From Vitrella brassicaformis CCMP3155 (lineage: Eukaryota > Protista > Chromerida), in NCBI GenBank assembly GCA_001179505.1, contig CDMY01000261.1, positions 80,936-144,935 on the forward strand: a stretch of 64,000 bases of DNA, written 5' to 3'. Of the stretch, positions 46,732 to 53,350 are shown in pieces. A program made the position numbers and the translations under genes. The notes beneath the pieces are model-generated. The model was not told the origin of the DNA. It was given only the letters and a program-made list of their open reading frames with translations, and ran no database searches. The stretch's first letter is position 1, and each line of letters opens with the position of its first letter.

Positions 46732-49700
46732 CTAGTAGAAGACCTCGGGAGCCATCCAGTGGATGAGGTTAAGCACCCCAAAGAAAATGAGCCCCCCGAA
46801 GGCCGTGCACAGCCTTGGCGTCACGCCGTAGAGCGAGATGCCGTTGATGCAGGCAACCATGTAGAGGGGCTGGGTGCCAAACAGCATCGGCCGGCTCACG
46901 TTGAAATGCACCAGCACACGAGAGAAGAGCAACGAGTAGAGCCAGTAGATGACCCCCACCCCGCAGTAGAGGAAGAATGACAGCGGAATCAAAACTGTCG
47001 ACTGCACCAGGATCGCCCAGAAGGGTATCATGTCGTACTGCGGAGCCAGCAGCGACTCCTGCACAAACAGCACCCGCGACACCAGCTCGTCGACCCACCC
47101 TCTCTCCCCCACACCCACAGCCGGCCCCCTATCCACACCCACCATCTCCCACTCCCCCACAGGACCAAAAAAATCCTCAGATATCCCTGTCGTTGGGCCG
47201 TCAGCCGACATACCGATCAGGTAGCCGTGCAGCAGGATGCCAGCGACCAGGAAGGTCATGTAGCTGACCAGCAGGAACAGCACGCCCCAGAAGGGCATGT
47301 GGCTCCACAATGACGGCCGCCTCACCAGCCCAAGCGCTCTGTGCAAGGGCAGGGGACGCTCCTCATAGGCTGCGTGAGTGAGGGGCCGGGGGAAGTGCCC
47401 GATGCCGCTGCTGATGCGCTGGGTGTTGGTCGACCGGTATGCTGTGTGGCGGTGAGGGGCCTCCTGCTGGTGTGCAGGGAGGGGGAAGGGCCACATGCGT
47501 GTGGACAGCCGGGGGGCGGCGCTGGCGCTTGTCTTGCCGAACGGCCAGATCCGGCCCTGCTGGTCGATGATGAAAGTCGAGTAGCACGACGCGCTCACGT
47601 GGGCCGCACGGATGCCCTGCAATACATACATCACGTCACACCGACAGACAAAATGAGCGCCAGATCCATGTGCAGTGAGTGCACCCATTCGCCAATCCAG
47701 CCACCCACGCACGCACCTGTCTGGAGAGCGCGGTGTTCTGTGAGAACCGGTCGACGCCCTCGGGTATCTTGAACCCCATGCCGTAGGCGTTGTTCCGGCC
47801 CTGGTTGACGGCTTCTGCACCTATGCCGTCGTCGAGCTGGTGTGCCGACACCACCCCCAGTTGGCCCTCAGTGTTGCGCCCCCACACGAGCACCCGACCG
47901 TCGCGCGTCTGGATGACGGCGTGTGAGTGGCCGGTGTGGTGCGTCACCTCCTGCCGCATCAGCAGGTGGAAGGCAAAGGACGGAAGGGACCACGCAGGCG
48001 AGCAGCTGATGCGCTCGACCTCCACGTGACCCAATCTGCACACAGGACACACACACACACACACACACATACCCATTTCACTCCATTTGTGTGTGTGTTA
48101 CCCACCTGTTAGGCATTCTGAGGCTACATGGCGCCCAGGACAGTTGCCCGCTGCTCGTGAGAGCCGCATGTGGTATCGTCCGCCGGAAGTGCCACCCGAA
48201 CATGTAGGCGTGGCCGGCATCATCTACGGCGAAGAAGCCCCTGGGCGCCCTCGCACTCACGTCCACCACCCGCACGCCACTGAGTGCCGTCACCTCACAC
48301 GCCTGGACGATCGGCAGCGTGGCCCAGTGAGGCCCGGGAATGAAGGACGGCGCCTCCCGACTACTGGCGAAGGGCGTGGTGGGCGGCAGGAGGACCTCCC
48401 TCTCGGGCCTGAGCAGCGCGCCGGGCTTCATGGGCGTGGGTTTATGGCCGAGGCTCTCCTGGATGAATGAGCTCATGCCGTGGAACAGGAGGGCCTCCTG
48501 CTGCACTCGAGTACTGAGCATCGCCCGGGGCACCAGCAGCCACGACGCATCGGGGAACAGGCAGGCGCGCCCATCCGTCGACCGGGCGATGTGTGCCACA
48601 CTCCCAGCCGCTATCTGGGCCACGCCGGCCTCGAGGCCGCAGACGGCCACCTGGTACCCGGCCATAACGGCCATCCCCAATTCGTCGGTGTGGAAGGGGT
48701 TGGCCACCATCAGCACCCCGCCCCTGGCCGTGCGCAGGACCAGTGTGTGCCACGGGTTGCAAGCGAACTCAGCCTGCACGATCCGCACCACCTCCACATC
48801 GCCATCGTCGACCCACTCGTCCGCGGCCGCCGGTGCTGCCGCTGCTGCTGCTGATGCTGCTGATGCTGCCGGGCGCGGTATCAACGGGTCAGAGGGGCGT
48901 GACTCAATCGGGTCACTCTCCTCCTCTCGTGCCTTGGTCGTAAACAGGGTCCATGAGCGCTGGGGGGTCCGGTGCGGTGTCGGTGTGGGCGGGGGGCCTG
49001 GGGAGGTCTGGGGTGGGATGGGAGCGACAGGGGATGGAGGGTGGCTGTCAGTGACCACGGGGACGTCAGGCCTGAGGTAATGCAGCGCCCGTCTGGGGTT
49101 GAGCAGCCGGTCCGGCCGCAGGAGGAAGAAGAAGTCCCTCAGCTGCTTCGACACCCACACGCACCCGTCGGTCGTCACCAGCGCCACATACTCGGCGGAG
49201 TTCATGCCGATGCTCATCGACAGACTCGCTATCGCCGGCCGGTCGATGGGGCGGGGGATGGACAATGGCACGCTGTTTGAACGTGCGGCTGGTTTGAACA
49301 GCGTCAGTCGCCGTGGGGGCGGGGGCGGCTGCAGCAGGGCGGAGGGAGGGGTGAGGGGGAGGATGTTGGATGGGCGCAGGGGGATGTCCACGCGAGTGGG
49401 GCCGCCCCCAGTACAGGCATAGAGGGACCCTCTGCGCAGGATCAGTGTGACGCCGCCGACGTTCTTGACGAGCACGACGGGATCGGCTCGGCCTCGCCTC
49501 GCATGAACAGCCGATCTCTTGGGGGACGCGTCGCCGCCCCTGAGCGGGCTGTCGGAGAGAGCGGTACCCATCCTCTCGCGATAGCACTCACGGACCTCCA
49601 TGAAGTGCAGCAGACGCAGCCCCTCGCCCGTCTCCTTTGTGGCGGGCGACACGGGTTCCTCGGCCTCATCTCCACCGGCATCCACCGTAGGGGGGCGTCT

Positions 49701-51783
49701 CCTGCAGCATCTCGGAAAGTGGCGCCTTGAGGTTGGCCGTGTTGCTTCGGGGGACTCGTCATCAGGCAAAGGGGGAGGAGATCCGGAGGAAGCAGCGGCG
49801 TGCTGCTGCTGCTGCTGCTGGTGGTCATGGTGGTCTGGTGCTTGTGCCGCCGACGACTCCCCTCCGACGTGTGCAACGGCAGCAAGGGAGGTTGAAGGCG
49901 ACAGCACGTCAGGCGACGACAAGACAGAAAGCTGCGGCTCGCTGGTCAGCACGCCAGCTCCACCCTCCACCACACCCAGCCTGGGCCCTCGCGGTTCATC
50001 CCCCGATGAGTGACCCTGGCACTCGCCCTGCCTCCATGGCGCACACCGCCTCATCTCCGCCCGGGCGGCCTCACCCAGCCGCTGCCTCGCCAGCCCCTCA
50101 ACCTCTATTGGGGCATGGAGCAACTTCTTCCAGTAGTGGGCAGTCTCGGTCAGGCTCAAGAGGTCGGGGACCACGTCGAGGAATGACGCGATCTTGATCA
50201 GGAGGCTGGAGGGCAGCTCAGACAGCTGAGCTGACGTGAGCCCCTCGCTCCTGAGTGGCCGGAGGGTCGGTGTGGGCGCGGGGGTGGGCTGGGAGGCCGC
50301 AGCCCGGCGCCTGGTGCAAGCGGGCCGGGTGAGTTTGCGGCCTGTGCACCGGAGGTGGTCTGGGAAAGGGTGGAGAGCGAAGATCTGCCGCATGTCATTC
50401 CACAGGGAACGAAGCGACCGCTGCACAAGGAAAAAGCACATGAGACCAAAGAAAGGAGACAGTCGTTGCTGTCTGTCGCTTCGACCCCTCTCGTGGATGT
50501 GAGAACGTGTGGATCGGATCACTGACCTTGGCCATGACAACGCATCCCAGCCCCAAGACACTCCTGACGATCCACCCGACTGGCGAGTTCATGACGATGA
50601 TCAGCCAGAATGACACGGCCCGCGCCATGAGCACCCACCACATGCCATCGACCTCCACTCCATCCCGCCCGTCGAAGAGTCTGCTCCAGACGTCGCTGCT
50701 GTCGCTGCTGCCCCCGTGCGCCGCCTGGTCGGTCATCATGATGAGGTCGCGGACCACTCCCCAGCCCTCCGAGCACACTATCCACGAGACCACCGTCATG
50801 AGCACCCATGGGAAGCTCACTGGCGCCAGCAGCAGGAAGGCCGACACCAGCAGCAGCTGCCCCAGCGGCCATGACGACATGGCCTCCTCCCTCAGGCTCG
50901 TAATGGCGTGCAGGATCGAGTCCATCCGCTGCTCGGTGCGGCCCAGACGGGCAGAGACGTCCTCTATGAAGCTGTCGATGAGCTGTAGAAGAGGGGACGG
51001 TCGGGCGGGTGAGGGTGAGGGTGAGGGTGAGGGGGAGGGTGAGGGTGAGGGGGGGACAGTGGCCTTTGGGCGGGGAGGGATCGGTCGTGAGTAGAGAGAG
51101 GCGAGAAGGTCGGTCGTGTTCTGGTGGATCTCCGTCGCCAGCGTCGAGTTCATCCAAAAGGCCGACTGAAAGAAGAGCCACACACACACACAGACACACG
51201 CCTCCGTGCACCAGGAAGAGGACGGTGTTTCTGTGTTTGTGTTCCCGCCACCGTGCTGTGCCGTGCTTACCCTGAGAGATAGCGCGAAGGCGGCCTTGAC
51301 ATAGAGAGTGAACGTCCTCCTCCTCAGTGACGGGTCATCCGCCCCACGCCCCGCCCGCCACTGCTCCATCAAGCTGCCCGCCTTGGTCAGCAGCAAGTCA
51401 CCCGCCTCATACGTATAACACGACACAAACTCGTCGAAGAGCACCGCCAGGTCGATGGACTGCTGCGGCGTGGGTGCCTTCCATGGGTCCTCGCTGAGGT
51501 CTCGCAGGTCCTTCATGAGGGTGTATGCCCGGTTGATGACGCCGAGCAGCCTGCCTGCCCCTGGAGCTCCCTCGCGCCGGTCCTTGATGACCTGCCACCG
51601 CAGACTGCCCTCGCGGCCAACGCTGCCGTCCTGGGCGTCGCACGAGGGCGACAGCACCGACACGAAGGTGAGGAGTGAAGATGACAGGAGCGCTGAGGCC
51701 ACGTAGAGCAAGCAAACCGCCGCCACGCCGGCCAAACAGGCGCGGACCAAAACGCATAAGCGCCGGGAAAAAGCCATCGCCAT
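46732..51783 (-). CDS. ~1556-aa multi-pass membrane protein: N-terminal TM region + F-box + RCC1-like propeller + C-terminal TM bundle
   Basis: Five exons (51783-51271, 51165-50527, 50420-48106, 48035-47717, 47616-46732) total 4671 nt in frame. F-box LSELPSSLLIKIASFLDVVPDLLSLTETAHYW; RCC1-like HSHAVIQTRDGRVLVWGRNTEGQLG, IAAGSVAHIARSTDGRA and VSASCYSTFIIDQQGRIWPFG. Hydrophobic helices occur at both ends. Confidence 0.7.
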
Positions 51784-51963
51784 CGAACCAAAATCCGCAA
51801 ACTACTCAAACCGTCACATAGTTGTGTCCTTGCCAACTGTGCAAGCTAAGAGCTGCGAGCTCACAAAGGGAGAGAAGGCGCGGGAACGTGGCAGTAGAGC
51901 ACGTGCGCATCCCAGAAACCGACGGGAGGAAGTCAAAACACACTTGACAACAATTGATTGGCA

Positions 51964-53350
51964 ATGAGGAAAACGGTGAAAGCGGCACGAACAGATCCGG
52001 CCTCTGCGGACGAAGATAGAGCCGAGCTGCACTCCATACCCTTCGAGCAGCTCAGGTAGGTGGAGAGATGACCATGTGTATTTCAGCTCGTCGACGATGG
52101 ATGGTTTTGCTGTCCTGTCAGGCGGCTTCAGAAGGATGGTTTCGTCGCTCACACGCCGCGCACAAGGACACACGCTGCAGAGGCGGCTACGTCTGACGGC
52201 CCGCCGACGGGCAAGAAGATAGGTTCGAAGAAGAGGAAAAAGTGAGCGCACACACTGGGAGGAGATCTGGTTCGTGTCATCCATCGCCGACACGGCTCGT
52301 ATGTTTGTCTGGTGTTGCCATGTCGTGTGTATTTCAGGCCTCTCGAGGTGTCATCGAAGACCCCTGTCGCCCCGCCTCCGACGAGCGAAGCGCCGCTGCG
52401 AAAGAAGCGGCCGGTATGCTGACGCTGACGTGACACATCTTGAGAGTGACAGACACACAGACATGGTTTGGCGCCTGCCCTGCCTGTCAGGTGGCGCGAG
52501 ACCCACGGTTCAGCGATTTGTCGGGCCCGCTCAACATGGACCGCTTCCGCGCCTCCTACAGCTTCCTGGACGACATTCGGGAGCGTGAGAAGGATGTGCT
52601 GCAGCAGACCATCAAGCAGCAGAGTTGGGGGGGCAAGAAGAGGAGGAAGGCGGCGCCCAAGCTGTCCGACAGGGAGGTCCAAGAGGCGCAGAATGTGCTC
52701 AAGAGCATGGTAAGCAGAGCCCGATGCGCCACCCACTCTCTGTCTGACTGCGGTCGGTCGTGGTGTTCTTGGGTCACACACATGAGCAGAGGCAGCAGGA
52801 TTCTCTTCGTCAGCGGAGGGGCGAGCTGATAGACATGAAGAGGGAGCTCAAGCAGCAGGAGAAGAAAAACATCGTCGAAACCGGCAAGAAGCCCTTCTTC
52901 TACAGTGAAGGTCAGTCCAGCCGAGCAATCACTCCACCGTCCATCTGGCTGTTGTGCTGTGCTGTGCCGCATCCATCCATCCATCCATCCATCCATCGAT
53001 GCAGGCAAGGTGAAGCAGCTGCTCATGAAGAAGAAATACGAGGAGCTCAAGAAACAGGTGGGTGGGTGGATGCAGACATGCAGATCAGATGCACAGACAG
53101 ACCAGCGACTGAGTCGGTTCCATCCATTTCTTTGCCTCCCGTCCATCCATCCCCTCCTCAGGGGAAGGTTGACGCGTTTGTCAAGAAGAAGAGGAAACGC
53201 CAGGCAGCAAAGGTCAGTCAGCCACGCCAGCAGGCTGGCAGCCCTTGCGCCTTGTGGCATGGTTCTATCCTTTTCCTTTGTTTGTCTGTGCAGGACCGCA
53301 AGTTGCTGCCGAACCAGAGGCCGAGAGAGGCTTCTCTCGATGATGCATGA
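51964..53350 (+). CDS. RRP36: rRNA biogenesis protein RRP36
   Basis: Spliced ELHSIPFEQLR|RLQKD..KKRK|PLEVSSK..|VARDPRFSDLSG..FRASYSFLDDIRERE..|..ELKQQEKK..GKKPFFY|..KKYEELK|GKVDAFVKKKRKR|DRKLLP; these motifs are typical of RRP36/DUF947. Confidence 0.85.

Follow-up and report, generated by a model that had tools for sequence, protein, structure and literature searches.

The genome of the chromerid alga Vitrella brassicaformis CCMP3155 (GenBank assembly GCA_001179505.1) contains, on the minus strand of a 64-kb stretch of contig CDMY01000261.1 (positions 80,936 to 144,935; in the following the window, whose own numbering is used for all coordinates), a candidate gene for a membrane-embedded F-box protein with an RCC1-like propeller. 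Four minus-strand open reading frames (ORFs) were listed at this locus (50395-51783, 48078-50561, 47636-48076, and 46732-47820), and reading of the sequence together with computed joins connects them into a model of five exons (513 + 639 + 2315 + 319 + 885 = 4671 nt, i.e., 1556 codons plus a TAG stop), without any internal stop across the joined frame. Each of the four introns starts with GT and ends with AG, and their acceptors (TTTCAG, GTGCAG, GTGCAG, and TTGCAG) are pyrimidine-rich and of the (T/G)(T/G)GCAG type. A preceding interpretation of the letters by themselves, here called the sequence-only reading, had proposed that clean GT-AG introns yield a single frame of exactly this length, and the model reproduced the proposal in full, including the key intron at 50526-50421 in phase 0.

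The composition of the locus follows the proposed exons. The GC content at third codon positions (GC3) is 0.78 to 0.85 in each of the five exons when read in the frame of the model, and the overall GC content amounts to 0.49 to 0.57 in the introns and 0.55 in the flanks. Exon 3 has its highest GC3 values over the F-box and the blade-like segments (0.8 to 0.97) and lower ones over the low-complexity linkers (0.5 to 0.67); GC3 peaks fall on the F-box, the blade segments, and the putative transmembrane (TM) stretches. Splicing of intron 1, whose GC content is 0.57 and whose in-frame GC3 is 0.66, is suggested by its splice sites and its lower GC content.

Homologue searches and fold predictions were made exon by exon, and the searches of the alga's own genome covered the 72.7-Mb assembly with its 1064 contigs. 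The F-box-like motif of exon 3 (Table 1) has kept the landmarks of this domain, i.e., the L-P, the hydrophobic core positions, and the late W, and GC3 over the motif is 0.83 to 0.87. A 167-residue piece matched the profile PF12937 with 23.7 bits (E = 4e-5; cut-off, 24.3), and in a six-frame scan of the own genome the locus obtained 24.6 bits with the same profile and ranked 13th of 18. A comparison of a 76-residue piece with all PDB sequences (E <= 10) returned three matches only, namely, one FBXW7 sequence and two FBXO4 entries, whose F-boxes align in register with the motif and have L-P, S-F-L, D-L-L, and Y-W in common with it. A protein-interaction domain, represented by the RCC1-like blades, is present on the C-terminal side of the motif, and SKP1 loci are present in this genome. 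The F-box is probably real.

The propeller is most clearly recognizable in exon 4, which encodes a canonical RCC1 blade matching the Pfam profiles RCC1_2 (26.7 to 27.4 bits; cut-off, 22) and RCC1 (23.1 to 23.7 bits; cut-off, 21.7) as well as the PDB sequences of RPGR, UVR8, RCC1, BLIP-II, and HERC2, with E values down to 1.6e-11. Exon 3 gave only weak Pfam matches to RLD and RCC1_2 (E = 0.04 to 0.1). Six more blade-like segments, five in exon 3 and one in exon 5, were found by eye from a pattern of alternating hydrophobic strands, (T/D)xxG, hydrophobic residues, and G or W. A profile made from the alignment of these six divergent segments, from which the canonical blade was excluded, was searched against the PDB, and 26 of its 31 matches were beta-propellers, including designed ones, with an RCC1-repeat protein (2.6e-4), RPGR (1.5e-3), RCC1, HERC1, and HERC2 as RCC1-type representatives; the other five were four SecE entries and one glycosidase. 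By this profile, whose matches include RCC1 proteins, the divergent segments have the signature of propeller blades, and the seven predicted blades correspond to the count expected for the fold.

Since these blades are distributed over exons 3, 4, and 5, the three exons need each other, and the RCC1 inter-blade pattern (GQL.., P..V, I..) continues by eye across both the exon 3/4 and the exon 4/5 junction. Long inserts rich in P and A (~50, 110, and 80 residues) lie between the blades. In this alga, propellers of the RCC1 type have undergone a strong expansion and are found in many different contexts; well over 100 exon-level matches of the RCC1-like domain profile were recorded in its genome.

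Hydropathy analysis detected one N-terminal hydrophobic stretch, followed by two in exon 2 (~38 residues each) and by three or four in exon 5. Their Kyte-Doolittle maxima are 2.0 to 2.4, and the summed biological-scale values of six core segments range from -1.9 to +2.5 as a mere heuristic, by which several segments of at least 19 residues are compatible with membrane insertion. Each of the long stretches may represent one helix or two. With the first exon 2 stretch taken as one helix and the second as two, as in the low-confidence AlphaFold2 model of this exon, four passes precede the F-box, or three after signal cleavage, and either number would place the F-box in the cytosol. The 40 residues following the last N-terminal stretch have a net charge of +8 and the 30 residues preceding the first C-terminal one a net charge of +3, with -5 and -8 in the other loops; by the positive-inside rule these values favor a loop with F-box and propeller that faces the cytosol. 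The protein has only three N-x-S/T sequons, all of them outside this loop, which is weak evidence.

With respect to relatives, the predicted protein is a lineage-specific orphan within the collections searched, in which near relatives such as Chromera and the colpodellids were represented by any of their proteins that the public collections contain. No paralogue was found in the own genome, and word searches with exon 3, exon 5, and exons 1 and 2 as a continuous open frame retrieved no homologue; the match of exons 1 and 2 to a kinase (P0002) was discarded because it is confined to the PS run and has a coverage of 3%. ESM Atlas look-ups yielded nothing usable, and exact look-ups of the alternative ORF products had no match. 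Entries for this genome may be missing from these collections, and no conclusion follows from the absence of a match of the gene to itself. An exhaustive phmmer search with exon 3 against 1.84 billion representative proteins revealed no true relative and a single match, a metagenomic acidic repeat protein of 926 aa from one JGI metagenome contig (P0001). The similarity comprises a motif of 23 to 27 residues running from L-L-R-P-D-R-L-L to H-Y-L-R-P-D-V-P-V-V-T-D-S (exon 3 residues 433 to 459; 49044-49124), which is repeated about 13 times in the metagenomic protein. Because the same motif is counted many times through these repeats, the E value is inflated, and the match was rejected as a homologue and read as chance or as a short linear motif.

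The reading that we prefer, and whose chances we regard as about even, is that a single gene with five exons encodes a polytopic, lineage-specific membrane protein of ~1556 residues whose cytosolic loop with F-box and RCC1-like propeller docks to SKP1-CUL1-RBX1. Through an N-terminal signal or signal-anchor, a helical domain containing a (PS)n hinge would be exposed to the lumen or the extracellular space, and three further membrane passes would bring the chain back to the cytosol. There, the basic juxtamembrane stretch would lead into the F-box, which a disordered linker would connect to a seven-bladed and highly divergent RCC1-like beta-propeller. Three or four membrane helices would form the second bundle, at the end of the protein. 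The F-box would dock to SKP1-CUL1-RBX1 and thereby form a SKP1-CUL1-F-box (SCF) ligase in the membrane of residence, and the propeller, anchored at both ends, would lie flat against this membrane and bind substrates, possibly assisted by the TM bundles or the luminal domain; the bound substrates would then be ubiquitinated. A role in complex-plastid protein traffic, which the sequence-only reading had suggested as an example, was not borne out. Phenylalanine after signal cleavage is typical of complex-plastid leaders; the likely cleavage region of this protein is followed by Q, not F, and no plastid-related relative was found.

Several observations weigh against the preferred reading. The splice joins are derived from sequence logic, and in the absence of relatives conservation can confirm neither the gene model nor the functionality of the gene. 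Structure prediction from single sequences with AlphaFold2 provided unusable models, both for exon 3 (predicted local distance difference test [pLDDT], 37), where short strands appear at the predicted blades, and for exon 2 (pLDDT, 51), where the first hydrophobic stretch forms one helix and the second breaks at an N-S-P turn. The cytosolic position claimed for F-box and propeller is favored by the charges of the flanks (+8 and +3) and left ambiguous by the number of passes ahead of the F-box, since the stretches comprise 36 to 40 residues and three or five passes would result in a luminal F-box. The claimed domain order was found as described, with an F-box-like motif and an RCC1-like propeller between hydrophobic bundles; the reservation concerns the domains themselves. 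One RCC1 blade is canonical, the other six of the seven are recognizable just by a generic propeller motif, and the whole-domain RLD profile PF25390 scored ~30 bits versus a cut-off of 150. The F-box match sits right at the Pfam threshold (20.2 to 24.6 bits depending on the context), with the lowest value for the whole ORF (PF12937; 20.2 bits versus 24.3), and the second F-box profile, PF00646, attained 10.2 bits versus a cut-off of 20.5.

A score at or under the threshold is also what a degenerate or non-functional F-box would show. The locus would then encode a fast-evolving, lineage-specific membrane protein whose RCC1-like propeller serves only as a binding platform or as a module resembling a guanine nucleotide exchange factor, an explanation that accords with the extreme divergence and the lack of homologues and with the dozens of RCC1-like genes that occur in many contexts in this genome. 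We consider it unlikely, given that the hydrophobic core and the L-P and W landmarks are retained, that F-boxes are the sole PDB matches, and that GC3 remains high over the motif.

Even a functional F-box might act outside a cullin ligase. Yeast Rcy1, which functions in membrane recycling, works with Skp1 and without Cul1, and Skp1 is also a component of the RAVE complex. The Vitrella protein could correspondingly bind SKP1 as a regulator of membrane traffic or organelle contacts, for which the domain evidence is identical to that for an SCF receptor and for which membrane-associated F-box proteins of the Rcy1 type provide a general precedent. The sequence cannot separate SCF from non-SCF use, and with nothing specific in its favor this role appears improbable.

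Membrane protein and F-box protein could also be the products of two genes, one comprising exons 1 and 2 and ending with the stop at 50395 and the other encoding a separate F-box/RCC1-like protein with a C-terminal anchor that starts at ATG 50393. ORF1 indeed remains open for 43 codons beyond the proposed donor of intron 2, and the ATG is located 9 codons into exon 3 and ~55 residues ahead of the F-box, a typical layout of F-box proteins. The coding signal argues for a single gene. Over the 44 codons on either side of intron 2, GC3 is 0.86 (end of exon 2) and 0.77 (start of exon 3), whereas the read-through of ORF1 into intron 2 has a GC3 of 0.49 (21/43 codons; binomial P = 8e-7 versus coding at 0.82) and the upstream extension of ORF2 one of 0.57 (binomial P = 8e-5 versus 0.82). 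The signal ends at the intron 2 donor and restarts at the acceptor, as the one-gene model predicts and the two-gene model does not. Moreover, stop and restart overlap and leave no space for a terminator, a promoter, or untranslated regions, and the donor and acceptor of intron 2 are equal in quality to those of the other three introns. With GC3 dropping in both competing frames, one gene is much likelier than two, and we regard two genes as distinctly improbable. A non-functional locus, i.e., a decaying or spurious open frame with domains as relics, would suit an orphan with much low complexity and is highly improbable in view of 1556 stop-free codons over five exons with correct intron phases and a GC3 bias that is strong and even in every structured part.

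A polytopic F-box receptor, as preferred here, has only partial counterparts among known systems. To our knowledge, nearly all F-box receptors are soluble, and the small number that bind to membranes do so by means of a lipid tail or one helix. Human FBXO24 and yeast Saf1 consist of an F-box followed by an RCC1-like propeller as the substrate-binding domain; they differ in being soluble and without TM segments, and neither the exhaustive phmmer search with exon 3 nor the word searches revealed any kinship with them beyond the domain types. HRD1 and Doa10/MARCH6, the polytopic ligases of endoplasmic reticulum-associated degradation, resemble the proposed protein in concept, since in them a ubiquitin-ligase module on the cytosolic side is displayed at the membrane by a multi-pass protein. 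They carry a RING domain and act directly as E3, whereas the proposed protein would use its F-box to bring in a cullin-RING core as a separate unit, and homology is lacking. A more far-reaching version of the preferred reading assumes a membrane-built SCF receptor whose TM bundles and luminal domain recognize membrane or luminal clients while the F-box/propeller loop recruits SKP1-CUL1; such a cullin-based counterpart of HRD1/Doa10, arisen independently in a chromerid alga, is a tentative and rather doubtful proposal.

Membrane-anchored F-box proteins have been reported, e.g., for the beta isoform of FBXW7, in which a unique TM domain precedes the F-box and the WD40 propeller (PMC10111352). 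Like the proposed Vitrella protein, this isoform is an SCF receptor that unites membrane anchorage with an F-box and a beta-propeller for substrates, but it has only one N-terminal TM segment and a WD40 instead of an RCC1-type propeller, it lacks both a luminal domain and a TM bundle at the C terminus, and beyond the F-box motif there is no sequence relationship to the Vitrella protein. Arabidopsis CFB (AT3G44326) binds ASK1 via its F-box, and its predicted C-terminal TM helix is required for membrane localization and function (PMC5853388). It shares the membrane anchorage of an F-box protein and differs in its size of 363 aa, its single C-terminal TM segment, and the absence of a recognizable substrate-binding domain; it belongs to a plant family to which no similarity was found. 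FBXO1 of Toxoplasma is membrane associated without a TM segment (PMC6685633). The novelty asserted by the sequence-only reading was thus overstated with respect to membrane anchorage, which is known from FBXW7-beta and CFB. For the combination of TM bundles on two sides with an RCC1-type propeller, a text search, which is a weak test of absence, found no published description, nor did it find one for any F-box protein flanked by TM bundles or for one that unites TM helices with RCC1. If the preferred reading is true, cullin-RING ligases can be built permanently into a membrane like the RING ligases of endoplasmic reticulum quality control, and the protein would be a natural example of how membrane clamping on two sides restricts the choice of substrates. 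The value of the example is limited, since the protein is an orphan from a single alga in which manipulation is difficult, and since its function is entirely inferred.

Table 1. Features of the candidate F-box/RCC1-like gene in the direction of transcription (window coordinates)
Feature	Position	Strand	Remarks
Exon 1	51271-51783	-	171 codons; ATG at 51783; GC3 0.81; start of helical, probably luminal, domain
N-terminal hydrophobic segment	51646-51765	-	exon 1 aa 7-46, after RR
Intron 1	51166-51270	-	105 nt, GTAAGC..TTTCAG, in frame, with (GT)n run
Exon 2	50527-51165	-	213 codons; (PS)n hinge, two long hydrophobic stretches, two N-x-S/T sequons
(PS)n hinge	~50995-51058	-	exon 2
Hydrophobic stretch	50752-50883	-	exon 2 aa 95-138
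Hydrophobic stretch	50530-50646	-	exon 2 aa 174-212
Intron 2 (key junction)	50421-50526	-	106 nt, phase 0, AAG|GTCAGT..GTGCAG|CGG; GC 0.52
Exon 3	48106-50420	-	771 codons + 2 nt; basic juxtamembrane stretch, F-box, linker, putative blades 1-5 with P/A-rich inserts
Basic juxtamembrane stretch	50301-50420	-	40 aa, 10 K/R versus 2 D/E, net +8
F-box-like motif	50106-50231	-	L-S-E-L-P to Y-W-K-K-L-L; exon 3 aa 64-105, Pfam match aa 66-102
Linker, F-box to propeller	49491-50048	-	low complexity, probably disordered; Q-run, P/S/A-rich; GC3 dip 0.57-0.67
Blade-like segment B1	49386-49484	-	alignment, profile matches to propellers; four short strands in low-confidence AlphaFold2 model
Blade-like segment B2	49137-49238	-	alignment, profile matches, low-confidence AlphaFold2 model
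Blade-like segment B3	48672-48800	-	alignment, profile matches, low-confidence AlphaFold2 model
Blade-like segment B4	48543-48653	-	A-A-G-S-x-A-H motif; weak RCC1_2 and RLD Pfam matches; alignment, profile
Blade-like segment B5	48177-48308	-	alignment, profile matches, low-confidence AlphaFold2 model
Intron 3	48036-48105	-	70 nt, phase 2, with (GT)n run
Exon 4	47717-48035	-	319 nt; carries canonical RCC1 blade B6
Canonical RCC1 blade B6	47843-47977	-	exon 4; Pfam and PDB matches
Intron 4	47617-47716	-	100 nt, phase 0
Exon 5	46732-47616	-	294 codons + TAG; blade B7, basic stretch, C-terminal hydrophobic stretches
Blade B7	47521-47616	-	opens exon 5; alignment
Hydrophobic stretch	47203-47301	-	exon 5 aa 106-138
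Hydrophobic stretch	46903-47031	-	exon 5 aa 196-238
Hydrophobic stretch	46750-46818	-	exon 5 aa 267-289

The blade region of exon 5 has a weak match on another contig of the same genome (G000:C294:59366-59698, plus strand; E = 0.004; 25% identity), and an F-box-like match is located ~4.6 kb away on the opposite strand (G000:C294:64261-64380, minus strand). This pair probably represents an unrelated RCC1-like gene beside an F-box gene.

Exon 5 could harbor a further in-frame intron of 84 or 102 nt that ends at 47059. An intron of 155 nt (GTATGT at 47213 to AG at 47059) was rejected, since with it the frame leaves the high-GC3, TM-encoding one. GC3 dips to 0.60 to 0.67 in the interval 47059-47213, which corresponds to an acidic loop between the predicted C-terminal membrane helices. 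The strong donor (GTATGT) and the acceptor (TGTGCAG) of this interval are 155 nt apart and do not keep the frame; the interval may comprise an alternative or cryptic splice site.

Upstream of the studied gene, the plus strand carries an RRP36-like rRNA-biogenesis gene with at least two exons (52440-53350, start approximate; PF06102, E = 2.4e-15). Because this neighbor diverges from a common 5' region, the ATG at 51783 is a plausible true start and an extra 5' exon is unlikely; the ~650 bases between the two genes (51784-52439) probably contain a shared bidirectional promoter.

The window is eukaryotic, with a GC content of 0.54 to 0.66. Microsatellites of the (GT)n/(CA)n type are located within introns 1 (51181-51200) and 3 (48041-48070), and similar runs, which are common over the whole window, account for the pseudo-ORFs of the ORF list that read 'THTHTH' and 'CVCVCV'.

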